From: Macrostomum lignano
Taxonomy: Eukaryota
Reading direction: 5' to 3'
Assembly: GCA_002269645.1 (NCBI GenBank)
Contig: NIVC01002474.1
Location: 1-46,102 of the forward strand
DNA: 46,102 nt
This document shows positions 1 through 24,951 of this stretch, piece after piece. Both the position numbers and the translations under genes were made by a program. Positions within the stretch are counted from its first letter, which is position 1; every line of letters begins with the position of its first letter. The notes under the pieces were generated by a model. The model made no database searches. It was not told where the DNA came from and was given only the letters and a program-made list of their open reading frames with translations.

Positions 1-96
1 ACATTAGGGAAAGCGTTTGTTTCATATTATCCATAAACGTAGGAGTGAATACAAAATGGTCTAATAAAAGTACATAGACGGAGGCATTTAACTCAC

Positions 97-3000
97 TTGT
101 AGTGCAATGTCTTTGTGACCCACTTCCAGATTTTTCTCACAATAGCGATGCCGCTTTGGTTTCGGCTTGCAGCACAACTGCAAACGACTTTGGATGTACA
201 GTTTTCGGCGACAGTTTTTCACGTAGCACTGGCGCACGGACACAGAACGCTTGCAGTGCTTGCTGCAGCCACCGATTTTAACTTTTGGCTTGCCGGCATG
301 TCGGCGGCACAAAATGCGCCGCTTGGTGACTCGTTTCACTTTCTTACAGCCGCCATGCTTGGAGCCGCTGGGGCGATAAGTCACCTTCGTTTTTACCATG
401 TCTTGCCGTTAATGGCGCACCCGGCGCGTTTGGAACCTCGCTGGCAATGGCAGAAGCGCAGCACTGTGCGTCGTTTGCGCACGCAACCGCAACCGCGGCG
501 TTTCGTCCATTCGATTGAGAACCGATTGTACCAAGCGCGGTGTCGCTTGAGCCCGCAGTGTCGCTTAGTGAGTCGACGCCGTACGTAGCGACGCGGACAG
601 TTGATGTGTTTGCGCCAGCGTCGGGTAGTGCAGCTGCACGTGGCGGCGCCGCGCTTGCTGTAGCAGGACTTGCGCGTGTAGACCAGGTCTCCGGCTTTAG
701 CGTCGCAGCGACGACTTTTGGTAGATTTCTTCGCACAATCTGGATGCGTCAGTGTATCGAAGTAAGTGTTTTAAAAGTGATTGCAAACAGCTTCTAAATA
801 CAAATGGCCGAAGATATTTTTATTAATACTTTCACTCACTGCAAGCAAACACTCGAACTACAGCGCGTCGTCGACATTTGCACCGATGCACCCAGTGTTT
901 GACTGTGGTCCTCTTTCGGCGAAAATTGCGACACTTAGTCCAGGAAACACTTCGACGTTTGCATCGGATTCTAGTGTGCTTCTTCGTTATTTTCAGCACG
1001 CACGTGCGCCTGCGAATCCATCTACGATGATGCAATCTCTTAACTATTTTAAGACGCCATTTGCGGATTTTGGTTGTCAGAACTGTGCCCTTGCGAGAAC
1101 AGCGCTGTCGACGAGTAGGCTTCGGACAGCGGCAAGGTTCCGTATACCTGAAATTAAAACGTGCGCTCGTAAAATCTATTATAATTAAATTTCAGTTAGC
1201 AACTTGCAAACTTCAGGACCGAACAGCTTCTTACCATACTTTCCGACGCTTTAGACAATGCCTCTTAACTAGTTTGCTGCGCGGATGCGACAAATGATAG
1301 GTGATCCGGTAAACCCGCCTCTTAATTCGCTCTGAAGTGCACTTCTCTTTCACAGTACGCGGCGGTCGACACATGCACAGCAATTGACGAATTCGTTTGC
1401 GGCGATGGCACCGACAGGCTACTCGACTGTAGCGCACGATCACAACTTTCTGTTTGGTGTGTCGGTTGCACTTGCTGGCTCGAGTCGAACCTTTCGGGCA
1501 GACAATTTTGCGCGAGACAATCCGCCTACGCTTGAGACACTTTCCGTGGGAGAGGCGCCAAAACTGTTTGATGTTTTGGACAACTCCCTTGGCTGCCTTG
1601 CAGCGCTTGTAGTGCTTCGGTCGAGGACAGCAGCACATTTTAGTGCGAATGATTCGCTTTGCTATTGCGCATTTGCAATTCTTCACTTCGTAGAGCAGAA
1701 TAACTCGATGCTTTTTGCAATCCTTTCTGCAGCGACCGATTCGTACTCGCTTTCGCTTGCATCGAACACTGACTCGAATCCGTTTGACCTTCTGCAAGCA
1801 GTGGCCCTTGAATAGATTGTGTTTAGTCAGCACAGTTACCATTGGTTTTCTAAGCAACGCTTTACTCTAGTCGGCTTTGGACAACAGCAAACGATGGGTT
1901 TGGATCGGGTAATTCGTTTGCAGCGGCATTTTTTCAACTGATACCAATTAGTGGTGATTTTTCCTTGACAGTCTGGCTTAGTTGGACACTTCTTTTCGCG
2001 CCAACGACGCTTAGGACATTCTAGATGGTTAGTAATAGTTTTGACGCGCTTGACGCAACGATTTTCGAGTCGCGAAATTTTCCAGCTAGTTCTGACTTCA
2101 AGCTTCCGCTCGTCACCTTTGCAGAACTTTTTTGTGTAACTCTTTGGACAGTCTGGCAGAAATTCGGATCAGGGAGTTTTATAGAATGACTGTTTTTTAA
2201 ATTAAAATTAAACAAAGATACTCGTATTTCTCAGCAACACTTACGACAGATGATCTTTCGTTTAACAGTGCGCTTTTTACAACTACACTTATGCCTTAGA
2301 GGCTTATAGGAAACGCAAACTTTGATCCGATAGCCGGTGCTTTTGTTGCATTTTCCCAACTTGCAACCGCCTCTTTTGCAAGCTGGAAAGGGGAATGAAT
2401 AACAATCTTTACTATTTAAAATAGAACATGCAATCGCAGTATTAGACTAAGAGGCTTTCGGTTACCAAGTCGACGAACGAGCACGACTTTCCTGCGACGC
2501 ACGCAGGCTCGTCTAGAAGCGATAAACACAGTCCATTTGCTCTCTCGTTTTGTCGCTCCGCTGCTCCGATCGCAATATACTCGACTGGTCGGGTTGCGCT
2601 TGCAACAGCAGCGAACTTTAATTACCTGGCGATGCTTGCGGCACTTGAAATGATCTCCGTGGCCAGATGAGGTGTACCAGGTCTTCACAATAGACTTGTG
2701 ACAGCTGGTCTTGCTGCATTTGGTTCGCTTAACTCGAGTGTTTGGACAACCTGACGGTGGATAATTTGATTTGAACAATTGGATAATATAAAAAAGCTAC
2801 AAGCTAATATTTAACATACATAAGCTTGGAATGAAACTTACTGCACAGCACTCGATGAGTGACTCGACGGTAAACTTTGCACCGACACTTTTTCGGTCGC
2901 CGTAGCACCTTCCGAACTGTTCGGTGCCGAGTCTTTTTATTACATTTGCTTCGGTAGATTGTGTTGCGACACTTGTGCAACCGGTGCAGCAATTTTTTGA

Positions 3001-6000
3001 CAACTTTAGTTTTACACTTGTAGGTGTCACGGTTAAACACTCGGCGCTTAGTGATTCTAACAACATCGCGATCATTCACGCATTTGACATTGGACCTAAC
3101 AGCTGGTCTGCAGCAGCAAGTTCGGTGGGTGATTTTGTGCCGAATAGCGCAACGGCAGCCCTTGGGTTTGTGTAAAATTTTTACAATTTTACGCTTGCAA
3201 GTGCGACGGCTACACGCTAGTACTCGAGTTTTAACATCGCGTCGACAGGTCAGTTGATGCCTCTTTGTGGTGACTCGCTTAACGCAACGACCATGACTGA
3301 GATGCCAGGTGATCTTACTCCGAAGCCACTGGTGCTTGGACCTGTCGCAGCGCACTGGCAGGCGTTTTGCTCGTGGACAACAGCAGACTTTACTGACACG
3401 CTTAACCCGACGTCGGCACCGGCAATGATGAACGTAGTGATCGATCTGCTTAACGACTCGACGGCAGGTGTGCCGATTGCACGATCCAACTTTCTTTTGC
3501 TTTACATGCTTAGAACAGCGAACGGGCGTTCGGACTGTGCTTCGTCGACGTACGCAAACGTGCTTCGAAGCATTGAATACGTAGTAGACTCGGGTGTGAA
3601 CCCAAGCCGCAGTGGCAGAGTCACAGCGTTTCGTTCGCTTAGGTCGCTGTAGACAGCAACAGGTGCGGTGGCGTCGCTTGATGGCTACTCGCCGACAGCG
3701 GCAATGAGGTCGGGAAACCTTGTACACTAGAGTGTGCAGCGGCTGTTTACAGGTAGTACGATCGCACCTGGGATGTTTTAGTATTTTTTATCATGTTGTA
3801 AGTTAAAATTGATGAGACAATACTTTGAAAATATGGGGCATGCGATGAATCTAGAAATCTTTAAAAGCATTCCCTCAAATACAAATTTTACGGAATCGAT
3901 ATTTAACTTACTTTCCTACTACAGTCTTCCGTTTGGCCTTGCAGTGCCAAGATCTTATTAATCGCAATTGTTTGATACGCACACAACGCCAGTTCCGAAG
4001 CCGCACTAGCGTCACTCGCTCGTAGATTGCGCTCCGACGACAGAATCGCTTTCGCTTTGTCTTGCCTCGACAGCAACAGACGCGCTTCTTTCCTGTGAGC
4101 CGGCTGATCTTACGGCACCGACATCCGTGAACCACGTGGTGAACCTTGCGCTGATGGCTGATGCATTTGTGTCGGTCGCAGGGCTGCCAAACAAGCTGGC
4201 GAAGCTTGGTGCACGCGACTGGGCGTGTCTTTCGCTTTAGCCAACGTTTGCAGCCGCACTTTTTGCCGCTCAAAACTCGATAGCCAACAGTCACTTGTTG
4301 CCAAGCTTTGCCGTCCTTGACGCAACGCTTTGGATGTTTCACAGTCTTTGGACAGCAGCAGGGGCATGCGATTCGCTTTACAACCGCATAGTAACACGAG
4401 CATCGCTTGCTGTCAAGTTTCAGCTTCATTGTGTAGATGTGGCGTTTCTTGCAACCAGTTTTCTTGCAAGCTGTGTATCTACGGCGGATCTTGTGTCGAC
4501 ACGTCACCCTCTGCTTGCGCCTTTTTACGCGTTTGTAACAGCGGCCGTGACGCAGAGCAAAGGATGTGGTCTCAGTAACCCAGGAACCAGCGCGACAAAG
4601 GCGTTTGCGTCCACCAGCTGGGCAGCGGCATCGAATGCGGCGAGTTACGTAGCGAACTGTTTTACAACGCTTTTTAGCGGAGTCCCAACGTCGAATCTGG
4701 GTGACGATTCGTCGAGTAAAGCCAGCCTTCGGGCACTTGTATTTGCGGGTTATTGTCTTGCAGTCTGAATGAGGTGCATAATAATGTTCTCATGAAAATA
4801 TGCTAATTAGATAGAAAAAATCGTGCGTACTATCGATAAAATTAAAAATACATAAAGCTTAAATGCGCAAGAAGTTTCACTTACGGCAGTTTCGTCTCTT
4901 CTTGACTCTTCGCTTAATGCATCGACAGCCCTTGCGAACTTCGTAGACTTTTGTCTCAACGTAGTGCTTATTCTTAATGCACTTTGTGACGCTATAGTGA
5001 GTCTTCTGGCTGCATGCTGTTAATAGAAGTAATTCGATTGTTAAAAAAGTATTTTGCAGTAACAAAACAGTTCTACAATTGACTTACAAACTCGATGGCT
5101 CTTGGTAGTTTTCTTTTTGATGCAACGCTCCTTCTTATGACTCCACGTTTGAGTATGCACTTCGGTCACTACTACGCCCTCAGCTCTGCGACAATAGCGT
5201 TTCCGGCGAACCTTGTGAGCGCATCCACATTTGCGCGATCGACGTTTAACTGCTCGCACGCAGGAGCACTTCCGCTTGACCGAGTAGTGCGTCAGCGTCA
5301 CTTGAATGCGTCGTTTAACGTCGCACTTTTTCTTCTCGGTGAACGATTGCGGACAGCTGTACGCCCGATATCTCTTCTGACGCTTGCGAACGCAGGAACC
5401 CTTCTTCAGCACGTAGCGATAGGTGACTGTCACTTTCAGGTTGCGATGTTTATCGCAATATTTTCTGCGGTCATGCTTGGCTTCTTTGTTCTCACGGTTG
5501 CAATCTGAGGAAAAAGTTGCTTTCATTCTGTATGATATCGTCTGTAGAGGTCAGATAACAATGACAATGTGCAGACTTACTGCACCGAAGTCGATTCTCT
5601 AGAGACCATTGCCTGACACAGCGGCATCCTTTCGGCTTCAAAATTCCAATGTAGACCAACTTCACTCCAGATTTTGGTTTGCAGACGCTCTTTCGTTTGA
5701 CGCTATGCGAGCAGGTCACTTGGCTGACCTTGACTCTGCGTCGCTTGACGCACTTTCCAGACTTCAACAGCCAGTAGGTGGTGCGAGTGACGTAAGCGCT
5801 CGACTCGTGATCGCAGTGGCGTTTTCCAACGATCGGCTTGGGGCATTCTGAAATAAAAGATTAGCTTAAATTAGCCGGAAAATCAACTACCGGTGCTGCA
5901 GTTGAATATTTAAAAGGAATTTTGCACTCACTGCAACGTCTTCGCGTGACTCGCTTTTTTTGCACGCATTTGCATCCCTTGCGCTTCCAATGCGTCACCG

Positions 6001-9000
6001 TGACGGTTAAAACACCAGTTTTCTTGTCGCACCGTTTAGTTCGTTTCGTCTTCCGTCGACAATGCACCGGAGTTCGAGTCTCTCGCACCCGTTGCACGCA
6101 GGTCCGGCAGCCGCGCAGTTTCCAGCTCACCTTCCTAGTGATCCACTCTCCGGTGACGCGATTGCAGCGTCGGCTCGTTTTAGTCGGATTGCATCGCTTG
6201 CGACAGGTTCGCTTGGCAACGGTTGACAGACAGCGGCAGTTCTTCACGTGCCAGCGATAGGTGGCGATATAGTAGTAGCCAGGCTTCGGATGCGGCAGAC
6301 GCTTCTTAATGGCGGTCCCCTCGCTATTGTGCTTGCATCGAATTCTGGAGGTCGTCGTGCGTCTCAAACGGACGCATTCGTGTTTGTCCTTGCTGAGCTT
6401 GGTGTAGGTGACTTGTTTGACGGAGTGCTTGTGCGAACGGCACCAAGTCTTTACGCGCTTGTTGCTGGTGCAGCAGCAAGGGAAATGGATGTGCTTAAAC
6501 ACCTGGAATAGTTTTGTTTGATGCTCCCATTGCTTATGAAATATGACGGGTACAACTTTCACGGGTGGCTAGATTAAAGTACATGACGTACCTTAGCATG
6601 ACAGTGCTTTCTCTTGTGATGTTTGTCTCCATCCCGCGACCATTTTGTAAAGTAAAAATACGTCTTAGTATAATGGCACTTGGAGCCACACTTCTTACTA
6701 TTGCAGCCAGTCTTCGGACATTTTGTCGTTTTGACGAAGTTGCCCTGCGGACAGCCGCACAACTCTTTGACGGTGCGCCGGACTTTCTCGCAGCTGCAGC
6801 TGCCCTTCTTTCGGCGATAATATTCGTAGCGGACTTTACGATAGCGTGAGACGCCTTTGCCACCTGAGTGATGACAGGGCCCGGCGTGTCGGTAGACACC
6901 GTGCAGGCAGTCTGCGTGAGTACGAATTCTAATTTAGTTTAGTTTGCAGAAAAGCTTGTAAATTGTACAGACAAACGGACAAAATACATACTTGCTCCAG
7001 ACAGGGATATACAGACAATCAGACATGATCATAGCCTGTTAGACATGCTCATTACCTGTTGGACAAGTTCATCACCTGTTAGAAGAATCATAGCCTGTTA
7101 GACAGGGTCATCACCTGTTAGACAGGGTCATCACCTGTTAGACAGGATCATCACCTGTTAGACAGGGTCATCACCTGTTAGACAGGGTCATCACCTGTTA
7201 GACAGGGTCATCACCTGTTAGACAGGATCATCACCTGTTAGACAGGATCATCACCTGTTAGACAGGGTCATCACCTGTTAGACAGGATCATCACCTGTTA
7301 GACAGGGTCATCACCTGTTAGACAGGATCATCACCTGTTAGACAGGGTCATCACCTGTTAGACAGGATCATTATCTGTTAAACAGGATCATCACCTGTTA
7401 GACAGGGTCATCACCTGCTAGACAGGATCATCACCTGTTAGACAGGATCATCACCTGTTAGACAGGGTCATCACCTGTTAGACAGGATCATCACCTGTTA
7501 GACAGGGTCATCACCTGTTAGACAGGGTCATCACCTGCTAGACAATATCATTATCTATGAAACCATCCAAAAATATTTGAAAATATTTACCATACAAGTA
7601 TTTTACAACTGTTTGGAATTAGATAGAGAATGCGATTTAAAGCTGTCTAAAATCTAGCAAAAAGTGCAAATCGAAACTCACGCAGTCTTGCCACTCGTTT
7701 CGACCGCCTCTTGACGCAGTCGCCATTTTTGAGGACGTACCAGATTTTCGTGAACACCTTAGCACCAGTGACTTTGTCGCATCGAGCCTCCTTTTTAGCT
7801 GGTGGACAAGCAACCCGGTACTTTCTGGTGGTTGTCTTCTTACGACACTTGTGATCTTCTAGCAGGTATTGCACCTTGATCAGCTTCTTCCAATAGCGAT
7901 CGACTCGCACAATTTTCTTGTAGCCCTTCGGACAACCTTTTAAAAATGTGAAAAAATTTTTTGTTTTTAAGAAAAAATCAGTGTTTCTAAGAAAAATTCA
8001 TTGTTTCTAAGAAAAAAATCAATGTTTCTAAGAAAAATTCGTTGTTTCTAAGAAAAAAAATCAATGTTTCTAAGAAAAATTCTTTGTTTCTAAGAAAAAT
8101 TCAAGCAGTTTTCAAAAACGACTACTAAAAACTGAAAATTAAAGATTTTTAAGAGGCAGGAGGCCTGGAGAACTTTGAGCGACATTGTTGCACAACCGGT
8201 GAAAGGCATTACTGCCAATTCTGCCGACTCCCCTGAGCAGGCACACACAAGCGCGCGGATACGTACGCCGTCATGCGCAGGGGCCATAACTTTATTTATC
8301 GTTAGGCATGTACACTTCACTGTGCCTTGGGAGTGGGCCCTCAAAGCCCTCAATTGCACGAGCAGAGCCAAGCCGAGATTCCAATTTAGCCCCAAATTAA
8401 TGCGACTGCACATGGAATCGAGCCTGGGCGGCTGGTGCACAGGATTTCCAAGGATACAGACTAGCTTCGACTTCGTTTCGTTTCGCATTTTCTATTTAGT
8501 GAAGACTTTGTGTCAGAGTTCGTCTACTGATGAGTAGAAAGTATAATGTAGAGCTAAATTTGGCATACGTCTGGCAAAAAAACAGGTCGAGTCGACAAAG
8601 CAAGACAGAATAGAAATATCTTTGCCAAACTCACAGCATTTTCCAACCAGCCGCTTAACAACTTTTTTACTGCACTTGCATCCACTGAGCTGGTAATAGC
8701 TGGAAATCTTGGTCGCTTTGCACGTCTTTCGTTGGCAAATCAGCTTTGCTTGGCGTCTCTTGGGGCAGTTAATCTTCCGTTTCACTTGGCGCACCCAACG
8801 AACGCATTTGTTGTTCTTGAGCCGCAATCCAGTTATTTTCTTAATCCGATAGCCGTTAGAGCAACTACGCTTTACGATGCGCTTCTTGCTACAATAGCAG
8901 AGCAGGTTATGCTCCTTGGCCAGCTTCCAGATGCATTTGCAGTTTCTCGCTTGCTTAGTGTACACCAGCTTCTTGCGATGTTTGCGTCCCGGCGCGCACT

Positions 9001-10536
9001 TCTTGAGAACGGTTCGTCTGCCCGAGCATTCTGTGATTAAAAAGGTAGAAGCGTAGATAGATTAAAAGGTAAATTACACATGGTGAGAGTGACTCTCTGA
9101 GAGAGACAATCTCTGTAACCTCGCTAATTGGGCCACATGTGCAACCGACAGCTCAGCCGCAGCTAATGCGCGGCACATCTGCAGGTTGCTAACGGCGGGG
9201 TCACCGCACACCCTCAATTATCCCCAGCTAATGCTGGCACCCATTTTACAGCTGGGTGAACTGAAGCAATGCAGAGTTAAGTTGCTCAAGGACACAAACT
9301 GTTCCAGTGCGATCGGGAATCGAACCCCCGACCTTCAAGTCGCGAGTCTGACGCTCTGACAACTAGGCTACAACCCCTGCCTTAATCTAATGCTTAAAAA
9401 AACAAAATTGTTATAATTATAAGCTCACTAATTTTCTTCACAACTTGTCGTCGGGTTATTCGCTTGCACTTGGTGCACTTCTCGGCGGCTTTGAACACCT
9501 TGGTGACGCGGACCAGTTCGGTGTGTTTCACGCATTTGCTGCTGCTGACAACCTTCAGCTGGCCAGAGGGAGGGCAGGGACACTTCTTGCTGACTCGAGT
9601 GACTCGACGCAGACAGCGGTGCTTGCCGTGGGTCTCTCGGTATTGCACAATGCGCTTGCCTGTTCGCACGCCTTTGCAGTAATTGCACGGCTGCAGCTTG
9701 GTCTTGGCTATGCTGGGACAGGCTGCAAATGAATGGGTTGATTGCGGCTGCTTAAAGCGTAACTTATCACCTTGGTGCTGGCGCCCCTTGGTGCTGGCGC
9801 CCCTTGGTGCTGGCGCCCCTTGGTGCTGGCGCCCCTTGGTGCTGGCGCCCCTTGGTGCTGGCGCCCCTTGGTGCTGGCGCCCCTTGGTGCTGGCGCCCCT
9901 TGGTGCTGGCGCCCCTTGGTGCTGGCGCCCCTTGGTGCTGGCGCCCCTTGGTGCTAAAGCCACTGGTGCTAAAGCCCCTGGTGCTAAAGCCCCTGCTGCT
10001 AAAGCCACTGGTGCTAAAGCCCCTGGTGCTAAAGCCCCTGGTGCTAAAGCCCTTGGTGCTAAAGCCCCTGGTGCTAAAGCCCTTGGTGCTAAAGCCCCTG
10101 GTGCTAAAGCCCCTGCTGCTAAAGCCACTGGTGCTAAAGCCCCTGGTGCTAAAGCCCCTGCTGCTAAAGCCACTGGTGCTAAAGCCCCTGCTGCTAAAGC
10201 CACTGGTGCTAAAGCCCCTGGTGCTAAAGCCCCTGCTGCTAAAGCCACTGGTGCTAAAGCCCCTGGTGCTAAAGCCACTGGTGCTAAAGCCCCTGGTGCT
10301 AAAGCCTATTCACCAGCCATTCACAAAGCCCGATCACCCGATCAGCAATAATCAGTTTTGTTCTATGTAAAAAAGGTGTCCACAGAACACGAACTCACCC
10401 CCGCACGGTTCGTAGCGGACTACAGTGCTCTTGATGCACTTGCCGTGCGGACCGGGCAGATAACGAATCGATTTTATTATTCGATTTTTGTACCGCGTGG
10501 AGCACTTGGACTCGATCCGGCGCTTGTTTGGGCAGC
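97..10536 (-). CDS. Exons 5-20: array of roughly 45-50 cationic Cys-rich modules of about 45 aa
   Basis: Two recurring alternating motifs: CP-x6-8-C-...-W/Y-x-L-x2-3-G-x-C-x-K/R-R-...-C and C-...-C-...-GCxC-x10-11-CCC. K+R was 21 of 70 residues in a counted sample, with very few D/E. Most introns are phase 1, just before a module-opening Cys. Confidence 0.8.
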
Positions 10537-13500
10537 CTGAATAGAAAGTTAGCGAGCGGCTTTAAGCTTCAACTCAAATGTTAAAGATTTGAACAAATTG
10601 AAGAAAACAATTGTTGATTGTTTCTCTATTTTGGCGCTAACTGACTCCGTTATCTGGCATTCTATTTCGGCGCCAGCTGACACTCTACTTGGCGTCCAAA
10701 CTGACACTCTATTTTGGCGCCCAAACTGACACTCTATTTTGGCGCCCAAACTGACACTCTATTTTGGCGCCCAAACTGACATTCTATTTTGGCGCCTAAA
10801 CTGACATTCTATTTTGGCGCCTAAACTGACATTCTATTTTGGCGCCCAAAATGACATTCTATTTTGGCGCCTAAACTGACATTCTATTTTGGCGCCCAAA
10901 ATGACATTCTATTTTGGCGCCTAAACTGACATTCTATTTTGGCGCCCAGACTGACCCTCTATTTTGGCGCCTAAACTGACATTCTATTTTGGCGCCCAGA
11001 CTGACCCTCTATTTTGGCGCCTAAACTGACACTCTATTTTGGCGCCTAAACTGACACTCTATTTTGGCGCCCAAACTGATACTCTATTTTGGCGCTAACT
11101 GAATCTCCATTTTGGCGCCATCTTAACGCTCTTTTTGGCGTCAACTAACTTTTAATTTGAGCTATCTTACTTTATTTTGGCGCCAACTGACACTTTCTAC
11201 ACCTAAACATAATCCAGAAATCATTAGAAAATTTCAAAACGAACGAGCCGTAAAAAAGCAACTCACGACACTTATTGCGGCCGCAAGTGGCCGCGCAGAC
11301 AGCCTTGTACAGCGGCTTGCTGCATTTCCCTTGCCGCAAAATATTTTTGCACAATTTGTCGCTAAACTGATTCTCCCCGCATCTTGTCTCGCAGTGGCCG
11401 CAGGTCAGCCGGCAGAATCGCGCCATCACCTCCGGATACCTCTTGCACCGGCCGCGAGCTCGCCACTTCAGACACTTTTTCCGAGGCATTCTGTCCAAGC
11501 ACAGTTTGTTCAGGCACTCGCACTCCTTGGGCGGCACGCAGCGGTTGCTGCTGTCCAGGACGAAGCCTCGCTTGCAGCGACAGCCTTCGGCGCTGGGCAG
11601 GTGAAAGCATTTCTTAGGTGTGCCGAAGAAATGACTGCCGCATGTGGCAGGACATGGGCTGGCCCTGCTGGTGAAGTGCTCGTTCGGGCCGCACTTTATT
11701 GCTGAAGGTTGTTGTTGAGGAGGCTGATTTGGTTGAATATTTTAGGTCGATTAGCCATGCGTTTGATCTATAATTTAATCAGAGGCCACGGCACCTTATC
11801 TCTGATTTCACCTGCGATGAGGGCCGCCACCCACCCCCACCTTATCTCTGATTTCACCTGTGAGGAGAGAGGGCCGCCACCCACCCCCACCTTATCTCTG
11901 ATTTCACCTGAGATGAGGGCCGCCAACCATCTCCACCTTATCTCTGATTTCACCTGTGAGGAGAGAGGGCCGCCACTCACCCCACCTTATCTCTGATTTC
12001 ACCTGAGATGAGGGCCGCCAACCATCTCCACCTTATCTCTGATTTCACCTGTGAGGAGAGGGCCGCCAACCACCCACCTTATCTCTGATTTCACCTGTGA
12101 GGAGAGAGGGCCGCCAACCACCCACCTTATCTCTGATTTCACCTGTGAGGAGAGAGGGCCGCCAACCATATCCACCTTATCTCTGATTTCACCTGTAAAA
12201 AGCCGCTCCTACACTTTTCCTTTTTTAAACAAGAATAAAAGTATTGCTAATTGATGCTACTCATAGTAGGTGAATTGCGCATCAACTTATTAGTTATAAA
12301 CACAGCTTACGACATCCGCTTCGATGCCTCCAAGACAGCGGCTTGTGGTGCCTGGCGCAGCGTCTCGATTGCAGGTAGAAGCTGGCGCACAGAATCTTCT
12401 TTCTGAGAGCCCCCTTAGCCGAGCAGGCGTCTGCGATGCACGGCCGCAGTACTTCTCGATTCAAGCAGCCGTCCTTGCCGTTAATCACCCGACTGCACCG
12501 GTGCACAGCCTCCCGCTTGGCGGCCGAGCTCAGGCATCGAAGCTTCCGCTTGACCGGACGGCAGCCAGCCTCGGACAGCCAGCTGCCGACTTCGTCCTTG
12601 CCGTGTCCGTCGCAGTCGCCGGCCAGACCCTCCAGCTTGCCGCGGTACTTGCCGCTCAGCCAGTAGGTGGCGGACCAGTCTCCGTCGAAGCCGACCCAGA
12701 AGTTGCAGCGCTTGTGCGCCAGCACCAGGTCTTCGCCGGAGAAGAAAATCCTCACACCTTTGTCCGGCCCGTGGGGCACCGACTTCAGCTGGCCGTTCAC
12801 CTGCGATGGTTGTGCGAAATATCGGTTTGGCCTTGGGCAACCAGAGTCTTACACATGCTCCCACGGGGTGTACACGGTTTCTGATCGTCAGGAATGTACA
12901 CTCTCTACGCCTTGAGGGTTGGCTCTGATGGGTGTGAATATCTAGCATAACATGTCTAGAGTTCAGGAAGCTTTTAGAATTCCCAGATGCTCAGTTGCTG
13001 GGCCAGCCACCCAAATCCTCAGTTGCTAAGCCAGCCTCCCAGATCCTCAGGTGCTGGGCCAGCCTTCCAGATCCTCAGTTGCTAAGCTAGCCTCCCAGAT
13101 CCTCAGTGCTGGGCCAGCCTCCCAAATCCTCAGTTGCTGGGCCAGCCTCCCAGATCCTCAGTTGCTGGGCCAGCCTCCCAGATCCTCAGTTGCTGGGCCA
13201 GCCTCCCAGATCCTCAGTTGCTGGGCCAGCCTCCCAGATCCTCAGTTGCTAAGCCAGCCTCCCAGATCCTCAGTGCTGGGCCAGCCTCCCAGATCCTCAG
13301 TTGCTGGGCCAGCCTCCCAGATCCTCAGTTGCTAAGCCAGCCTCCCAGATCCTCAATTGCTGGGCCAGCCTCCCAGATCCTCAGTTGCTGGGCCAGCCTC
13401 CCAGATCCTCAGTTGCTGGGCCAGCCTCCCAGATCCAAACCAAACAATAATCAAACACCAGCCAAACTCACGGTGAGTTTCCGCCCAGCCAGCAGTCGAT

Positions 13501-14617
13501 AGACCTTCCCATCGACTTTAACGGTGACGGCACTCAACCGGGACAGGCCGCTGCTCGGACCGCTGACAGCTTTGAAGCTGGCCAGAATCTCCAGCTCGCA
13601 CAGCGATGAAGCATCCTTGTCGGCAACGGATCTCGTCAACAGCAGATCCCGTTTAAGGCAGCCTCCGAGGGCGGGGTCGGCAGTCACCCTGCCGCCATCG
13701 AACTGATAAATATGGCCTCTGGCGCCGCCGACGCTGGCGTAACAGTCTATTGAGTTAAAGGAAAACAAATGGCTTTGATTTGAGCATATCTACACCTGCT
13801 TCCATCTCCCATAATGTCTACCCTAATCTACATGTACCAGTTATGAGTACCCTCAATTTCTACCCTAATCTACCAATTATTACCTCTCAACAATGTGTAC
13901 CTTTAACTACCAGTCATACTTATCTCTGAATGTCTACCATAATATACGAAGTTTAATTACCTCTCAATGTCTACCTTGATCTGCCAATTATAATTTCCTC
14001 TCAATGCCAACCCTGATCTACGAATTAAAATTACCTCTCAATGTCTACCCCAATCTACCAATTTTAATTACCTCTCAATTTATACCCTGATCTACCAATT
14101 TTACCCCTCAATGTCTACCATGATCTACCAATTTTAATTACCCCTCTATGTCTACCCTGATCTACCAATGAAAATTACCCCTCAATGTCTACCTGATCTA
14201 TTAATTAAAATTATCTCTCAATGTCTACCCTGATCTACCAATAAAATTACCTCCCAATGTCTACCCTGATCTACCAATAAAAATTACCTCCCAATGTCTA
14301 CCCTAATCTACCAGTTATAATTTAACCCCAATGTCTACCCTAATCTACCAATTATAATTTAACCACAATGTCTACCACAATCTACCAATAAAAATTACCT
14401 CAATGTCAACCCTAATCTACCAATTATAATTACCCCTCAATGTCCAATCCATCAAGAAATACCTTAAAAGCCTGTATCTATACCTGCATCCACCTGTAAC
14501 GCATCCCGCTCAACGCCAACAACAATAAAGAAACTCACCACTATGAGCCAACGCAGGGGCACTCAGAGCTGCAAGGCAAACAAGAGCAGCTAGAAGCGGC
14601 ACTTGTCCAGCAGCCAT
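97..14617 (-). CDS. Giant secreted vWD-C8-TIL-ShKT2 protein with a long Lys/Arg/Cys-rich modular tail (mucin/adhesive-like); 20 exons in window, 3' end outside window; two 1-nt frameshifts
   Basis: Hand-built exons with canonical GT/AG sites and consistent phases: 14617-14539, 13746-13472, 12800-12311, 11701-11267, 10536-10399, 9722-9429, 9030-8635, 7936-7682, 6911-6592, 6502-5932, 5847-5581, 5504-5088, 5016-4885, 4764-3912, 3767-2842, 2750-2466, 2382-2245, 2152-1235, 1147-840, 739-97. These sum to 8140 nt, or 2714 codons if one G is restored at each of 1839-1840 and 396-397. The last exon ends CAA/GTGAGT, so the gene continues left of the window. Confidence 0.85.
7015..7558. repeat. Intronic 20-bp minisatellite (GACAGGGTCATCACCTGTTA), about 26 copies
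   Basis: Direct inspection; GGGT/GGAT variants. Confidence 0.97.
7962..8103. repeat. Short 21-23 bp tandem repeat (GTTTCTAAGAAAAA...), about 6 copies
   Basis: Direct inspection. Confidence 0.85.
8222..8445 (-). mobile_element. SINE family B copy lacking the A box
   Basis: Reverse complement aligns to about 40880-41095. Confidence 0.7.
9085..9377 (-). mobile_element. tRNA-derived SINE, family A (CORE-like body)
   Basis: Head GGGGTTGTAGCCTAGTTG (A box)...GGTTCGATTCC (B box); body TGTGTCCTTGAGCAA...CTTAAC...CTGTAAAATGGG resembles the CORE/V-type SINE domain; second copy at 22645-22824. Confidence 0.75.
9770..10306. repeat. Two abutting intronic arrays: 16-bp TGGTGCTGGCGCCCCT and 15-bp GGTGCTAAAGCCCCT
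   Basis: Direct inspection; the switch is at about 9950. Confidence 0.95.
10625..11150. repeat. Intronic 25-bp minisatellite (CTGACACTCTATTTTGGCGCCCAAA), about 19-20 copies
   Basis: Direct inspection. Confidence 0.95.
11267..11701 (-). CDS. Exon 4: TIL domain followed by two ShKT domains
   Basis: TIL: CGPNEHF...CPATC...C...EGCRCKRGFVLDSSNRCVPPKEC. ShKT1: CLDRMPRKKCLKWRARGRCKRYPEVMARFCRLTCGHC. ShKT2: CGENQFSDKLCKNILRQGKCSKPLYKAVCAATCGRNKC. Confidence 0.85.
11790..12198. repeat. Intronic 41-55 bp repeat with core CCTTATCTCTGATTTCACCTG, 9 copies
   Basis: Direct inspection. Confidence 0.93.
12311..13746 (-). CDS. Exons 2-3: von Willebrand factor type D domain plus C8 domain
   Basis: DCYASVGGARGHIYQFDG (vWD start, like C-x4-GDPHY-x-TFDG); WVGFDG; YRGKLEGLAGDCDG (like GLCGNFDG); C8 pattern CIADAC...LCASFYLQSRRC...LSWR...GC. 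Confidence 0.85.
12985..13436. repeat. 28-bp minisatellite (CTGGGCCAGCCTCCCAGATCCTCAGTTG), about 16 copies
   Basis: Direct inspection; same family, inverted, at 33445-34460. Confidence 0.95.
13810..14450. repeat. Degenerate repeat of about 41 bp in intron 1 (AATGTCTACCCTGATCTACCAATT...)
   Basis: Direct inspection. Confidence 0.85.
14539..14617 (-). CDS. Exon 1 of the secreted protein: signal peptide
   Basis: GAAG-ATG-G start; translates MAAGQVPLLAALVCLAALSAPALAHS (hydrophobic core, A-x-A cleavage site); GTGAGT donor in phase 1, matching the next exon. Too short for the ORF track. Confidence 0.85.
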
Positions 14618-14756: not shown

Positions 14757-15219
14757 CAGAAATTTTGCAATCTGCAACCCCCCCCCCGACTGTTTATGCT
14801 GAGCCAAGCAGATAGCTAAAATCATGATTTATGATTATACTACTGATCAACCCAATTTTCAATCAGTAGTGTTTAAAAGACACCTGCCTTTGCCAATAAA
14901 TTATTTATTTCTAGTTGACAAGATTTTTCGGTTGATTTTTATGTTCTGATATCCAAGTCGAGAGGTGCATTCGATCCAAATCAGAATTTCACCTGTTGTT
15001 TTATTCTTCGCTCTGACTACAGCATGCAACAATCAAAATAGCAAGTCAGTCAAACCGATTCACAAAAAATTATTGACAATGCCAAAGTGATTTTTTATTG
15101 AATCGAAAAATCCTATGATTAGGTCAGCAGTTTTAATCGAGCAAGCAAAATATGTCCTCTACTAGTGATTAGACTGCTAGTCATATACTTAATAAGAAGT
15201 GAAAACACCACCTCCATCT

Positions 15220-16195
15220 CATCCTAGTCTAACCTCTATCTCACCCTAGTCTAACCTCTATCTCACTCTAGTCTGACTACTATCTCATTCCATTCTCCCC
15301 TCTATCTCACCCTAGTCTAAACTCATCTGACCGTAGTCTAACCTCTATCTCACCCTAGTCTAACTACTATCTTCTTCCATTCTCCCCTCTATCTCACCCT
15401 AGTTTAACCTGCATCTCACCCTAGTCTAACCTCTATCTCACCCTAGTCTAACTACTATCTCATTCCATTCTCCCCTCTATCTCACCCTAGTCTAACCTCT
15501 ATCTCACCCTAGTCTAAACTCATCTGACCGTAGTCTAACCTCTATCTCACCCTAGTCTAACTACTATCTCATTCCATTCTCCCCTCTATCTCACCCTAGT
15601 CTAAACTCATCTGACCGTAGTCTAACCTCTATCTCACCCTAGTCTAACTACTATCTCCTTCCATTCTCCCCTCTATCTCACCCTAGTCTAACTACTATCT
15701 CCTTCCATTCTCCCCTCTATCTCACCCTAGTCTAAACTCATCTGACCGTAGTCTAACCTCTATCTCACCCTAGTCTAACCTCTATCTCACCCTAGTCTAA
15801 CTACTATCTCCTTCCATTCTCCCCTCTATCTCACCCTAGTTTAACCTGCATCTCACCCTAGTCTAACCTCTATCTCACCCTAGTCTAACCTCTATCTCAC
15901 CCTAGTCTAAATACTATCTCCTTCCATTCTCCCCTCTATCTCACCCTAGTTCAACCTGCATCTCACCCTAGTCTAACCTCTATCTCACCCTAGTCTAACC
16001 TATATCTCAAACTAGTCTAACTACTATCTCATTTCAATCTCCCTTCTATCTCACCCTAGTCTAACCTCTCACCCTAGTCTAACCTCTATCTCACCGTAGT
16101 CTAACCTCTATCTCATCCTAGTCTAACCCCTATCTCACCCTAGTCTAACCCCCTACCCTACCCTAGTCTAACCTCTTAATCTCATCCTAGTTTAC
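15220..16195. repeat. Intergenic composite satellite with a 22-bp core (TCTAACCTCTATCTCACCCTAG) plus 21- and 44-bp variants
   Basis: Direct inspection. Confidence 0.93.
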
Positions 16196-16508
16196 ACTAT
16201 ATTTCACCTTAGGATAACGTATATCTGAAACAATCTAGCATATGTCTCACACATTCTTACGTGTATCTCTTTCAGTCTAAATTCAATATGCAAGGCAATC
16301 GAATGGTGAAATGAAATAATTAAACCGAAAATAACAAACAAAAAACTACAGATTTTCTTTTTCGAACACGTTTTAAAACAAAAAATGCAATTATAATTAT
16401 AATATGGGATGTTAAAGATTGTTTTAATTCTACAAGCAATGATAATTAAAAGCTAAATTGACTTATTTCTAAGGTAGCAAAAATAATTAATAAATTTAAT
16501 ACAAAATA

Positions 16509-16849
16509 ACGGGTGTCCCAAAAAAAGGCAACACTCTGTGCGCTCACTGTGAGTGAGCAGTTAGGCCTATAGCACAGTAATTTAACAGGTCCGCAGTAAA
16601 CATTTGTAAGTTCCTCCCACAAACATTTGGTTGCGAAAGATTGTCTATGGCAGCTGTGTATGGCAAAGCTTGGCAGAAAAGCTAGCGTACACTTCTGCTC
16701 AATAACTCGCCTCTGGAGCAATTTTTCGCAACCAAATGTTTGTGGGAAAAACTTACAAATGTTTACTGTGGACCTGTTAACTGTGCTATAGGCCTAACTG
16801 CTCACTCACAGTGAGCGCACAAAGTGCCACCCCCCTTTGGGACACCCGT
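16509..16849. mobile_element. 341-bp MITE (Tc1/mariner-like) with long TIRs
   Basis: TA/ACGGGTGTCCC...GGGACACCCGT/TA; arms of about 130 bp, nearly perfect apart from a variable patch near the ends; spacer of about 80 bp. Confidence 0.82.
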
Positions 16850-17350
16850 TATAAACTAATGAAATGCAATCGATTTACTACTAAGTTTGTTTGGAGTAAA
16901 ATTTCTTGTACACACCTAACCAAAATTCACGTCACACAAAATTCTTAGCCATAGACAGATGGACTTGCAGTCTAGATAAGACAGACTATGTACATAGCTG
17001 AAGGTTAGGCCACAGACTAAAATAATAATAGAATCAAGTTTTTGTCTATAGAGTTCTGCCTCAAGCTTGACTGACTTGGAAAGCTAATTTTATCGCTACT
17101 AGTCTGTTTCTAAGGCAGTCTCCAGTCAGGGTGACTTTTAACCATAGAAATTTCAAATTTTTACCCCGTCATATACGAAACTAAACTTGCAGCATGGCAC
17201 AAAATCTTGGCATACGTTTTTAAAGCTAGCAATAACAGATTCGCGTATAAAGGATTATAAAAAATAAACTTGTCAATATACAGTACAGGTTGAATATAAT
17301 ACAAATAGAATAATTGCAATTCACTGCGCTCATTTAACTGTTTTTTACAC

Positions 17351-19470
17351 AAAATCACTGACTCAGATACGAAATCACTGACCCAGTTATCAAATCACTG
17401 ACTCAGATACCAAATCACTGACCCAGTTATCAAATCACTGACTCAGATACCAAATCACTGACCCAGTTATCAAATCACTGACTCAGATACCAAATCACTG
17501 ACCCAGTTATCAAATCACTGACTCAGATACCAAATCACTGACCCAGTTATCAAATCACTGACTCAGATACCAAATCACTGACCCAGTTATCAAATCACTG
17601 ACTCAGATACCAAATCACTGACCCAGTTATCAAATCACTGACTCAGATACCAAATCACTGACCCAGTTATCAAATCACTGACTCAGATACCAAATCACTG
17701 ACCCAGTTATCAAATCACTGACTCAGATACCAAATCACTGACCCAGTTATCAAATCACTGACTCAGATACCAAATCACTGACCCAGTTATCAAATCACTG
17801 ACTCAGATACCAAATCACTGACCCAGTTATCAAATCACTGACTCAGATACCAAATCACTGACCCAGTTATCAAATCACTGACTCAGATACCAAATCACTG
17901 ACCCAGTTATCAAATCACTGACTCAGATACCAAATCACTGACCCAGTTATCAAATCACTGACTCAGATACCAAATCACTGACCCAGTTATCAAATCACTG
18001 ACTCAGATACCAAATCACTGACCCAGTTATCAAATCACTGACTCAAATATCAAATCACTGACTCAGATACCAAACCACTGACCCAGTTATAAAACCACTG
18101 ACTCAAATACCAAATCACTGACCCAGTTATCAAATCACTGACTCAGATATCAAATCACTGACCCAGTTATCAAATCACTGACTCAGATACCAAATCACTG
18201 ACTCGGATACCAAATCACTGACCCAGTTATCAAATCACTGACTCAGATACCAAATCACTGACTCGGATACCAAATCACTGACCCAGTTATCAAATCACTG
18301 ACTCAGATACCAAATCACTGACCCAGATATCAAATCACTGACTCAGATACCAAATCACTGACCCAGTTATCAAATCACTGACTCAGATACCAAATCACTG
18401 ACTCAGATACCAAATCACTGACCCAGTTATCAAATCACTGACTCAGATACCAAATCACTGACCCAGTTATCAAATCACTGACTCAGATACCAAATCACTG
18501 ACCCAGTTATCAAATCACTGACTCAGATACCAAATCACTGACCCAGTTATCAAATCACTGACTCAGATACCAAATCACTGACTCGGATACCAAATCACTG
18601 ACCCAGTTATCAAATCACTGACTCAAATATCAAATCACTGACTCAGATACCAAACCACTGACCCAGTTATAAAATCACTGACTCAAATACCAAATCACTG
18701 ACCCAGTTATCAAATCACTGACTCAGATACCAAATCACTGACCCAGTTATCAAATCACTGACTCAGATACCAAATCACTGACTCGGATACCAAATCACTG
18801 ACCCAGTTATCAAATCACTGACTCAGATACCAAATCACTGACCCAGATATCAAATCACTGACTCAGATACCAAATCACTGACCCAGTTATCAAATCACTG
18901 ACTCAGATACCAAATCACTGACTCAGATACCAAATCACTGACCCAGATATCAAATCACTGACTCAGATACCAAATCACTGACCCAGTTATCAAATCACTG
19001 ACTCAGATACCAAATCACTGACCCAGTTATCAAATCACTGACTCAGATATCAAATCACTGACCCAGCTATCAAATCACTGACTCAGATACCAAATCACTG
19101 ACCCAGTTAACAAATCACTGACTCAGATACCAAATCACTGACCCAGTTATCAAATCACTGACTCAGATACCAAATCACTGACCCAGTTATCAAATCACTG
19201 ACTCAGATACCAAATCACTGACCCAGTTATCAAATCACTGACTCAGATACCAAATCACTGACCCAGTTATCAAATCACTGACTCAGATACCAAATCACTG
19301 ACCCAGTTATCAAATCACTGACTCAGATACCAAATCACTGACCCAGTTATCAAAATCCCTGACCCAGTTATCAAATCATTGACCCAGTTATCAAATCATT
19401 GACCCAGTTATCAAACCCCTGACACAGTCATCAAATCCCTTATTCAGTTATCAAAACCCAGTTATCAAAT
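17351..19470. repeat. About 2.1-kb satellite: 40-bp dimer of 20-bp monomers (CAAATCACTGACTCAGATAC / CAAATCACTGACCCAGTTAT)
   Basis: Direct inspection; a variant block recurs at 18041 and 18621 (580-bp higher-order repeat). Confidence 0.98.
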
Positions 19471-19506
19471 CAAATTTTCATTTAGTCCGATATTACATGT
19501 ATTTCG

Positions 19507-22500
19507 TTAATTCTTTTTCTTCCTGCCGCCTCTGCCGCCGCGTCCGCCCCTGCTGCTCGCGAGAAGAGCGGCAGCACCAGAAGGCAGCCGGGCGGTGCCC
19601 CGCCTGGAAGTGCTGGACACCAGCACCTGAGGCGGCGGCGTCACGCCCTCGACAGGTTCTATTAGCGACGAGTCCCTGTAGGCACTCTCGTCGTAAAGAA
19701 GCCGAGCGACTGGCCTCTTAGGAACTGTGGCCGGGACCTGAGGCGCAGCTGCGGCCTCCGACTGCCGCTGTTGCGACGCCTGGGGCGCCGACGTCAGCTC
19801 CGTCGGGGATGTTAGTGCAGAACTGGGCACAGAGGATCTGCGAGAGGTGTTAGATAGATAACCTACCTGAGGAAACTGAACCCTACCTGAGGAATCTGAA
19901 CTCTACCTGAGGAATCTGAACTCTACCTGAGGAATCTGAACTCTACCTGAGGAATCTGAACCCTACCTGAGGAATCTGAACTCTACCTGAGGAATCTGAA
20001 CCCTACCTGAGGAATCTGAACTCTACCTGAGGAATCTGAACCCTACCTGAGGAATCTGAACTCTACCTGAGGAATCTAAACTCTACCTGAGGAATCTGAA
20101 CTCTACCTGAGGAATCTGAACTCTACCTGAGAAATCTGAACTCTACCTGAGGAATCTGAACTCTACCTGAGGAATCTGAACTCTACCTGAGGAATCTGAA
20201 CTCTACCTGAGGAATCTGAACTCTACCTGAGGAATCTGAACTCTACCTGAGGAATCTGAACTCTACCTGAGGAATCTGAACTCTACCTGAGGAATCTGAA
20301 CTCTACCTGAGGAATCTGAACTCTACCTGAGGAATCTGAACCCTACCTGAGGAATCTGAACTCTACCTGAGGAATCTGAACCCTACCTGAGGAATCTGAA
20401 CTCTACCTGAGGAATCTGAACCCTACCTGAGGAATCTGAACTCTACCTGAGGAATCTAAACTCTACCTGAGGAATCTGAACTCTACCTGAGGAATCTGAA
20501 CTCTACCTGAGGAATCTGAACTCTACCTGAGGAATCTGAACTCTACCTGAGGAATCTGAACTCTATCTGAGGAATCTGAACCCTACCTGAGGAATCTGAA
20601 CCCCCAAACTGAGAAATCTGAACCCTATCTGAGGAATCTGAACCCTATCTGAGGAATCTGAACCCAACCTGAGAAATCTGAACCCCCAACCGGAGGAAGC
20701 TGAACCCTACCTGAGGAATCTGAACCCCACCTGAGAAATCTGAACCCAACCTGAGAAATCTGAACCCTACCTGAGGAATCTGAATCCCCAAACTGAGGAA
20801 TCTGAACCCAACGTAAAGAATCTAAAAGACACACTAAAAGCAACCCAATAGACCACAAACCCATCATACGCAGTCCTGGCGGCAGTTTGGCTGCGCAAAA
20901 GCCGCGCGGAGCTACCAGCCGTATCCCCAGTTGTCGGCGTGGTCGACATCTGTGGGGTTGACATCTCCGACACCGAGTCCATTTCCCCAGTGCTGTCGTC
21001 CTCCTCAGAGGAGAAAATCATATCTCTTGTTAATCGAGAAGGCTGAAAAAAAGAGTTTCAGATTGTCCGTCATAAATATATTAAAGCTGTTGTCTTTCTA
21101 GACACAAATGTATTTATTAAATACAATTTGTTTACAAGAAACACAAGCATGGTCTTAACAAATATTTAATACTGAAGAAAATACTGATAAATAAATAGCA
21201 CATCCAATGAATACAGAATGAATCCAATGAATACAGATCCACAAGTTCATTTCTAAAAACGTCATTAAATTCTAATTTCCAAGAAACACGGATCCGTTAA
21301 GTTCATTTTCTAAGAATGAAAATCAATTAATTCCATTTCAAAAACAGAGATTAATAACTCATATCTAAGAAACGCTGATCAATAAATCGCATTTCTAAGA
21401 AACGCAGATCAATAAATCGAAATGCAGATCAATAAATCGCATTTCTAAGAAACGCAGATCAATAAATCTCATTTCTAAGAAACGCTGATTAATAAATATA
21501 ATTTTTAAGGAACGCAGATTAATGAATCTCATTTCTAAGAAACGCAGATCAATAATTATCATTTCTAAGAAACGCAGATTAATAATCTAATTTCTAAGAA
21601 ACGCAGATCGATAAATCGCATTTCTAAGAAACGCAGATTAATAAATATAATTTCTAAGAAATGCAGATAAAAAACTTATTTCTAAGAAACGCAGATCAAT
21701 AAATCGCATTTCTAAGAAACGCAGATCGATAAATCTCATTTCTAAGAAACGCAGATGAATAAATCTCTTTTCTAAGAAACGCAGATCAATAAATCTCATT
21801 TCTAAGAAACGCAGATCAATAAATCTCATTTCTAAGAAACGCAGATCAATAAATCTTATTTCTAGGAAACGCAGATCTATAAATCTCATTTCTAAGAAAC
21901 GCAGATCTATAAATCTCATTTCTAAGAAATGCAGATCAATAAATCGCATTTCTAAGAAACGCAAATCTATAAATCTCATTTCTAAGAAACGCAGATAGAA
22001 ACGCAGATCAATAAATCTCATTTCTAAAAAATGCAGATCAATAAATCGCATTTCCAAGAAACGCAGATCTATAAATCTCATTTCTAAGGAACGCAGATTA
22101 ATAAATCTCTTTTCGAAGAAACAAAGAACTAAAACTCCCTAAAGTTCAAATTTTTGAATTTTTAAATTAAAAAAAACCAAAGGGAACTCACCCTAACCCG
22201 CTGCCGTTTAGTACCCGCTTTCACAGTGGCGGATGTCGTCGAGCAAGTCGAAGCTCTTGACGACAAACGCGGCGGCGGCGGCGGCGGCGGCAACTGGAGC
22301 TGCTCGATTTTATCCTGGAGCTTAGCGTTATCCAAATGAAGGCTGGCCACCTTAGCCATCTCGGCCTCCAACTCCCGTTGGGCCTTGGCTCGTTCGGCCA
22401 GCCTGTTATTCTCGGCCGCTTCAAGATTTCGCCGACTTTCAAGCCGGCGCTCTTCTAATTTGCGCCTATACGCGTCCTTCTCATCCTCCAGGTCGCGTTT

Positions 22501-24902: not shown

Positions 24903-24951
<49 letters not shown>

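Follow-up and report, generated by a model that had tools for sequence, protein, structure and literature searches.

The window analysed here, a stretch of 46,102 nucleotides (nt) from Macrostomum lignano (assembly GCA_002269645.1, contig NIVC01002474.1), carries near its left end, on the minus strand, a protein-coding gene of 20 exons. As read from the DNA, its product is a giant disulfide-rich protein, predicted to be secreted, in which a mucin-type head is followed by about 50 small modules rich in lysine and arginine (K/R). An earlier annotation (hereafter, the original prediction) had placed this gene at positions 97 to 14617 and proposed that it encodes an undescribed cationic, polymer-forming secretion.

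Gene structure and surroundings

Positions 1-15 kb of the window were translated in six frames, donor and acceptor sites were then scored between successive segments, and the remaining junctions were placed by eye. Stop-free segments rich in K/R and Cys chained on the minus strand only, and splice-site scoring gave a single clear solution at almost every junction. As originally proposed, the 20 exons can be joined: all borders are GT-AG, 38 of 38 splice sites in the model are intact, and, once two 1-nt breaks are bridged, the ATG at 14617 opens one frame of 2,715 codons whose last sense codon is at 91 (Table 1). The joined frame spans 8.1 kb without an in-frame stop, with 32% of its codons encoding K/R and lying one mutation from a stop.

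The first 14 junctions were gap-free in alignments to two independently annotated paralogous proteins (P0024 and P0088), and junctions 4-5-6 were reproduced in the UniProt M. lignano fragments P0006/P0007. Further, the head and first modules were matched at 98-100% identity by fragmentary UniProt models of this species, and several copies with this level of identity were present in an older M. lignano assembly. Phase 1 was found for 14 of the 19 introns; those in the modular body interrupt the motif C|x|CP where one module meets the next. Exons 5, 13 and 17 contain exactly one module each. Phase-1 introns at module borders, together with single-module exons, are the signature of a history of module duplication.

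Both frame breaks, in exons 18 and 20, consist of a single missing base, with module sequence running on in the shifted frame on either side. Each was bridged in the model by one inserted base (at 1846/1845, both reading frames carry module sequence in the flanks). At one of the breaks, the older assembly differed from the window solely in homopolymer lengths, and P0001, a garbled protein fragment, reads 'GKDM' across the 403/402 site. The breaks are probable assembly errors, of the kind expected from long reads. Reading them as short introns (71 and 134 nt from GTAA sites) was judged less likely, as such 'introns' would encode well-formed half modules in the shifted frame. As a separate observation, the two breaks (window 1839-1850 and 396-408) fall at homologous positions in two modules and within one and the same heptamer, ATGGTAA; each can also be read as a TG|GTAA donor.

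At its 3' end, the open reading frame (ORF) reads ...IALQVS, followed by the stop TAA at 90-88. The hexamer GTGAGT, shared with most donors of the gene, occupies positions 96-91 (CAA|GTGAGT) right before this stop, and the last module is cut mid-way. Since a consensus donor directly precedes the stop and the last module is incomplete, the gene may continue past the left edge of the window, with its 3' end outside and position 97 as the last exon base. The boundary at 97 in the original prediction thus coincides with the base before a donor-like site, whereas the ORF itself runs to 91.

The gene lacks annotation in its full form. When exon 15 and the C-terminal 318 amino acids (aa) were searched against 5.8 billion protein sequences, the only return was P0001, which alone covers exons 15-20.

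Table 1. Features of the giant-protein gene and its surroundings in the window
Feature	Positions	Strand	Content and supporting observations
Exon 1	14539..14617	-	ATG and signal peptide, aa 1-24 MAAGQVPLLAALVCLAALSAPALA; donor GTGAGT; collinear with P0024 N-terminus
Exon 2	13472..13746	-	VWD N-terminal half, starting DCYASVGGARGHIYQFDGG; AG/GT borders; junctions gap-free against P0024
Exon 3	12311..12800	-	VWD C-terminal half (to ~12585); eight-Cys 'C8-like' segment 12536-12312; donor C|GTAAGC
Exon 4	11267..11701	-	TIL 11693-11520; ShK 1 11513-11391; ShK 2 11381-11268; 100% identical to P0004/P0007
Exon 5	10399..10536	-	one full module, C-x9-C-x21-C-x10-C; phase-1 borders; junctions RNKC|R|CPNK and EPCG|A|CPS found in P0006/P0007
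Exon 6	9429..9722	-	modules; acceptor tttgcag|CC; upstream array 9770-10306 is intron
Exon 7	8635..9030	-	modules; junctions gap-free against P0024/P0088
Exon 8	7682..7936	-	modules; splice borders, paralogue alignment
Exon 9	6592..6911	-	modules; splice borders, paralogue alignment
Exon 10	5932..6502	-	modules; splice borders, paralogue alignment
Exon 11	5581..5847	-	double unit of two modules; supplied the first sequence for the AlphaFold2 single-module model
Exon 12	5088..5504	-	modules; splice borders, paralogue alignment
Exon 13	4885..5016	-	one full module, 44 aa
Exon 14	3912..4764	-	about six modules
Exon 15	2842..3767	-	about seven modules; double unit for AlphaFold2 taken from 3368-3667
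Exon 16	2466..2750	-	modules; splice borders
Exon 17	2245..2382	-	one full module, 46 aa
Exon 18	1235..2152	-	modules; 1-nt frame break 1846/1845 in GAAAACCAATGGTAA
Exon 19	840..1147	-	modules; splice borders
Exon 20	91..739	-	modules; 1-nt frame break 403/402 in GGCAAGACATGGTAA
Module array	91..10534 (introns included)	-	aa 428-2715; ~25 double units, ~50 modules
Kinesin gene	~19507..41524	-	motor in exons 41524-41138, 39386-38928 and 38161-37295
Satellite tract	15200..32500		mostly satellite; 19-40-mer arrays of up to 2.1 kb (17352-19455); strong C-over-G skew
Transposon remnant	42870..43604	-	244-aa ORF; Mos1/mariner-type helix-turn-helix and partial DDE transposase domains

Minisatellites with units of 15-46 bp in 8-34 copies occupy nearly every long intron (7021-7544, 9770-10306, 10654-11119, 11792-12196, 12981-13436 and 13835-14444). 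A coding reading of the 15/16-mer array at 9770-10306, in the ALAPG... or GFST... frames, was rejected: the array is flanked by a GTGAGT donor and a good acceptor, it is skipped in P0006/P0007, and similar arrays occur in five other introns. The 28-mer array in intron 2 (12981-13436) and a 31-mer array in the neighbouring gene (33446-34459) look like one repeat family in opposite orientation (CCCAGCAACTGAGGATCTGGGAGGCTGG...).

That neighbour is a kinesin gene, located upstream on the same strand, with a transposon remnant upstream of it in turn. The exons for its long coiled-coil tail are scattered among the satellites that fill most of the space between the two genes and within the tail region, and the UniProt model P0005 wrongly joins this tail to the vWD head.

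Head domains and cationic modules

The encoded protein is 2,715 aa long or longer (~317 kDa without its signal peptide), arranged as signal peptide, VWD, a segment with eight cysteines, TIL, two ShK domains and the cationic body. Its sole hydrophobic stretch is the N-terminal signal peptide (aa 1-24). On the spliced head, VWD scored 32.2 bits (Pfam cut-off 22.9) and TIL 37.8 bits (cut-off 24.5; E 4.9e-10 with exon 4 alone). ShK scored 24.0-28.8 bits (cut-off 20.9; 24.0 on the spliced head), in two stretches on the exon translation. The signal peptide, VWD, TIL and two ShK domains of the original prediction were thereby recovered, but its C8 domain was not: Pfam C8 (PF08742) had no match at E<=0.1 on the spliced head, where direct reading shows eight cysteines at the expected place (aa 207-281). 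No Pfam match to a C-type lectin or an EGF array was obtained on any exon or on the spliced head.

The body (aa 428-2715; 2,288 residues) contains 32.3% K+R, 9.9% Cys and 3.2% D+E, with an isoelectric point (pI) of 11.0. Its net charge of +664 (~+0.29 per residue) is distributed evenly, with +22 to +40 in every 100 residues. With 12.5% S+T, 3.0% P and only two N-x-S/T sequons, it lacks the character of a proline/threonine/serine-rich (PTS) O-glycan region, in agreement with the original prediction. Cysteine spacing recurred with a period of ~90 aa, with ~25 such units in self-profile searches, ~20 of them near-full. As the two halves of this unit are homologous (hhalign probability 96.5%, E 9e-10), the basic module is ~45 aa long and present ~50 times, which agrees with the more than 2,200 aa of ~45-aa modules initially described. 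A hidden Markov model of the single module gave 53-54 matches in the protein, 38 of them at E<0.01.

Within a module the cysteines follow the spacing C-x9/10-C-x~20-C-x~11-C, typically C-x9-C-x21/22-C-x12-C. K/R occupies nearly all columns of this gene that are neither cysteine nor hydrophobic, and strand columns alternate between hydrophobic and K/R-rich. Units inside the protein share just 20-35% identity, which indicates an old array with no recent tandem expansion.

The suggestion that the modules are folded and beta-rich was reproduced by structure prediction. AlphaFold2, given an alignment of the window's own modules only, returned models made solely of strands, with predicted local distance difference test (pLDDT) scores of 91.5 (double unit) and 95.5 (single module). 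In the prediction, each module consists of three antiparallel strands of ~12 residues; the model suggests that it is probably a small beta sheet pinned by two disulfides.

The modules could not be assigned to a named family, as had been stated at the outset. Pfam gave nothing recurrent for the exons, 15 local units or 62 family-wide units, and two unit profiles had no match at E<=10 among PDB sequences. Thrombospondin type 1 (TSP1), named beforehand as an identity that would overturn the proposal, was not borne out: WSxW and CSxTCG each occur 0 times in the protein, and Pfam TSP_1 matched neither the exons nor the local or family-wide units. A cystine-knot reading, based on C-x-C ... CCCP and on a UniProt 'CTCK' label, was also discarded, as the label sits on ordinary modules and no cystine-knot protein appeared among the fold matches. 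More generally, the UniProt names 'NTR domain-containing', 'TRAF-type domain-containing' and 'CTCK domain-containing' (P0001, P0002, P0005, P0100) sit on Cys-rich module fragments; they look like profile artefacts and provide no domain evidence.

A flatworm family of four-cysteine modules

When the unit profile was searched against 1.84 billion representative proteins, 74 clusters were retrieved at E<=1e-3 and 14 at E<=1e-30 (P0008-P0081), with a best E of 2.7e-139. All 30 family members that could be named were Platyhelminthes: cestodes (Echinococcus, Sparganum, Dibothriocephalus), trematodes (Echinostoma, Paragonimus, Dicrocoelium, Calicophoron), the monogenean Cichlidogyrus and several M. 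lignano paralogues. Family proteins reach 5,275 residues and carry up to 46 matched stretches each. Judged by these profile matches, the modules constitute an uncurated domain family so far found only in flatworms, in all major groups sampled. The original view that the modules fit no named family stands, but they are not unique to the window gene, being shared across a flatworm family whose members are often charge-balanced with VWA domains. Named relatives include PAA59660.1/PAA60779.1 (Mlig029998g6, Mlig010738g1) and PAA86075.1 (Mlig022224g1), all from M. lignano, as well as E. granulosus W6UV63 ('Collagen alpha-3(VI) chain'), Echinostoma caproni A0A183A713 and Cichlidogyrus casuarinus KAL3317405.1; the database names of relatives are automatic. 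Literature searches with accessions and Macrostomum gland markers found no paper on the window gene or its module family.

Among 367 non-redundant units, cysteine was present at a frequency of 0.8-1.0 at unit columns 2, 12, 35, 48, 58, 77, 79 and 90. Two further cysteines, at columns 63 and 91, are optional: both were present in 116 units, neither in 233 and one in 18 (Fisher p ~1e-72). Their nearly constant co-occurrence is as expected of a genuine extra disulfide.

Most relatives are charge-balanced (K+R ~15%, D+E ~11%), many with VWA domains, and polycationic character was confined to the window gene, P0014, P0018, P0024, P0054, P0034 and P0048. Since many relatives are charge-balanced, the positive charge is a derived overlay, carried by a subset, on a fold that is conserved throughout the phylum. 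The VWD/TIL/ShK head is shared by several relatives at 28-50% identity, and in P0014 (4,171 residues) one 12.9-kb transcript contig, taken from a public run, encodes both this head and a polycationic array, in support of expression of such relatives as one mRNA. An annotated paralogue is collinear with the window protein module by module, with 45-46% identity over 1,480-1,650 aa (P0024, P0088). In these comparisons, 137 of 140 and 167 of 167 cysteines are kept, while K/R stays K/R at 64-65% of positions and becomes D/E at ~3%. By this conservation, scaffold and charge are both under constraint.

Proposed role and comparison with known secreted proteins

In the reading that we favour, and whose chances we put at about even, the gene encodes a secreted protein that is likely assembled into multimers through disulfides and likely acts, in a flatworm matrix or secretion, as a binder of polyanions, sulfated glycans among them. 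After export, dimers or multimers would be cross-linked through the D-type head, by analogy with VWF and mucins. The body, as a long chain of beads with Lys/Arg at nearly all exposed positions, would then present cationic module faces that bind polyanions electrostatically and multivalently; candidates are the sulfated glycosaminoglycans of flatworm slime and rhabdites, the glycocalyx and acidic surfaces. As a scaffold, the protein would then lend cohesion to a secretion or the extracellular matrix, or condense it. Sulfated glycosaminoglycans occur in flatworm rhabdite slime (PMC5450325), and heparin blocks the function of the cationic Mlig-ap1 (PMC6410801), evidence that flatworm secretions make use of polycation-polyanion chemistry, so that both plausible polyanion partners and a precedent exist. 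A more specific version is tentative, and we hold it possible rather than probable: an undescribed, flatworm-restricted four-cysteine beta module family may have been turned, by this gene and a few relatives, into a folded 'anti-mucin', a disulfide-multimerised, rod-like polycation of >300 kDa that would condense or cross-link sulfated glycans into a secretion, for instance rhabdite slime, glue or an egg coat, unlike the disordered K/R repeats of known adhesion proteins.

Several results weigh against the multimeric polyanion binder. Many relatives being charge-balanced, the module fold is not a dedicated polyanion binder. Mucin-style end-to-end polymerisation lacks support from the full domain set, given the unmatched Pfam C8 and the fact that no C-terminal cystine knot occurs within the window, where the ORF ends in an incomplete module beside the donor-like GTGAGT. 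The reading frame itself needs repair at two positions, between 1846/1845 and between 403/402. The resemblance of the modules to the heparin-binding proteins pleiotrophin and midkine falls short of significance by fold (E 0.16-3.9, template modelling (TM) score ~0.26) and by profile comparison (hhalign probability against midkine alignments <=16%). Finally, six head peptides were not found in the searched part of the footprint and tail proteome supplements (PMC6410801), where trypsin would shred the body to di- and tripeptides. Proteins of this kind are nearly invisible to trypsin-based proteomics, which may explain their having been missed. The supplements of published in situ screens yielded no usable link to the window locus.

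A location inside the body has to be weighed against release in a secretion. The cestode, trematode and monogenean relatives are giant and charge-balanced, several carry the VWA domains typical of matrix proteins (W6UV63; M. lignano P0054, with VWA+VWD), and the family persists in parasites without duo-gland adhesive organs. These features would suit a component chiefly of the extracellular matrix or basement membrane, anchored by its charge to heparan-sulfate proteoglycans with no external release, a role that may be ancestral for the module family. For the window protein we consider this role unlikely, as its VWD/TIL/ShK head lacks VWA and it carries far more charge (+0.29 per residue) than the matrix-like relatives do. 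A role in defence, in which a multivalent polycationic scaffold in the surface mucus agglutinates or permeabilises microbes or deters predators, with toxin-like activity added by ShK, appears less probable still. The extreme positive charge, disulfide-stabilised fold, as in many antimicrobial peptides, and two ShK domains speak for it, as does laterosporulin, a defensin-like bacteriocin that ranked 11 (TM 0.64, short of significance) among the generic fold matches of the single module. However, a mass of ~317 kDa and a D-type head are more in keeping with a structural polymer than with an effector that diffuses, the signal peptide is the only segment found to be hydrophobic or amphipathic, and in helminths ShK domains are widespread among surface and matrix proteins that are not toxic.

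Two further explanations concern the state of this copy and the identity of its modules. The two frame breaks, the incomplete last module, the several 98-100% identical copies in the older assembly and the coverage of exons 15-20 by the garbled P0001 only, in a collection of 5.8 billion sequences, would be compatible with a window copy that has recently been disabled or was mis-assembled, any function residing in other copies. We regard this as quite improbable, because 8.1 kb of stop-prone K/R codons are free of stops, all 38 splice sites are intact and the breaks are single missing bases with module sequence on both sides and, at one of them, a homopolymer-length difference as in long-read errors. 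Lowest in our estimation, with little probability attached to it, is that the modules truly belong, as divergent members, to the pleiotrophin/midkine or thrombospondin type 1 superfamily, which would make the protein a multivalent heparin-binding signalling or guidance cue. When the double-unit model was compared with the PDB by Foldseek, pleiotrophin ranked 1, midkine-a 4 and midkine-b 23. Basic sheets occur in pairs in both, and the midkine C-domain spacing C-x9-C-x21-C-x9-C (checked against PDB 1mkn and 1mkc) is matched by the module spacing C-x9-C-x21/22-C-x10-12-C. Besides the low fold and profile scores given above, PTN_MK_N and PTN_MK_C matched 0 of 15 local units, PTN_MK_C matched 1 of 62 family units at E 0.5, and the hallmark motifs WSxW and CSxTCG are absent. 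With the single module, Foldseek returned generic beta hairpins only (ribosomal proteins, OB fragments), with no pleiotrophin or midkine. A 'chain of midkine-type basic sheets' is accordingly a lead suggested by the models, and no membership is claimed.

Returning to the proposed secreted, polyanion-binding polymer, its interest lies in the contrast with flatworm temporary adhesion, one of the few such systems understood molecularly, which relies on a polycation with its charge on disordered repeats. In the product of the window gene, charge of similar density sits on a scaffold that is rigid, stabilised by disulfides and preceded by a mucin-type head; if secreted, this product would be a second way of achieving wet adhesion, structuring mucus or packing granules. 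As a model it would be tractable, since single modules are predicted to fold confidently and could be expressed. Further, the family spans free-living and parasitic flatworms, includes proteins of 5,000 residues in Echinococcus and has no Pfam entry; its definition would improve helminth annotation and point to unexplored flatworm matrix or surface proteins.

Among known secreted proteins, Mlig-ap1 is alike in coming from the same species, in being giant and secreted, in its very high K+R content and in its vWD and TIL domains. Mlig-ap1 and ap3, the latter a split-off of Mlig-ap1 in other flatworms, are cationic cohesive proteins of temporary adhesion, whose K/R regions are Cys-free, low-complexity Gly/Arg/Lys repeats flanking a C-lectin/vWD/17-EGF core (PMC6410801, PMC9229212). 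The window protein, in contrast, carries its K/R on folded four-cysteine modules, has its head at the N-terminus and showed neither a lectin nor an EGF domain. The Mlig-ap1 epitope motifs SRKPRRKNRKSRKP, KNNKRRVRKARKNN and KSRKVN have 0 occurrences in it. The link to Mlig-ap1/ap2 drawn in the original prediction is hence one of analogy only; on sequence grounds, the window protein is neither Mlig-ap1 nor Mlig-ap2 but a different protein with parallel chemistry. M. lignano footprints also hold other giant VWA/VWD proteins, for example of 6,570 aa (pI 9.7) and 3,169 aa, besides Mlig-ap1/ap2 (PMC6410801, dataset 2). Peptides of these giants, including the abundant 6,570-aa VWA protein, were not present in the retrieved module-family proteins.

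Tandem arrays of thrombospondin type 1 repeats, such as the C-terminal repeats of Mlig-ap2 and SCO-spondin, resemble the window protein as series of small three-stranded disulfide-bonded modules in giant secreted proteins, but differ in the motifs and Pfam TSP_1 matches that the window modules lack. Pleiotrophin and midkine share the paired, basic, disulfide-pinned three-stranded sheets and gave the best PDB fold matches, yet they are 13-kDa two-domain cytokines rather than arrays of ~50 modules, and no sequence, profile or fold score was significant.

Helminth surface mucins with ShK/SXC domains, for example the Toxocara TES mucins, provide an instance of ShK on a large, repetitive, secreted structural worm protein; their cores are Ser/Thr-rich, O-glycosylated and anionic, in contrast to the cationic Cys-module core encoded by the window gene. 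Gel-forming mucins and VWF are likewise very large, secreted and rich in Cys, and share with the window protein an N-terminal VWD with an eight-cysteine segment and TIL behind it. The window protein has one D assembly instead of three or four, Pfam C8 is unmatched and there is no PTS/O-glycan domain. Its central region is cationic and folded where that of a mucin is anionic and extended. Taken together with Mlig-ap1, the gene represents a variation on a known theme, that of giant vWD-headed secreted proteins with cationic repeats in the same animal.

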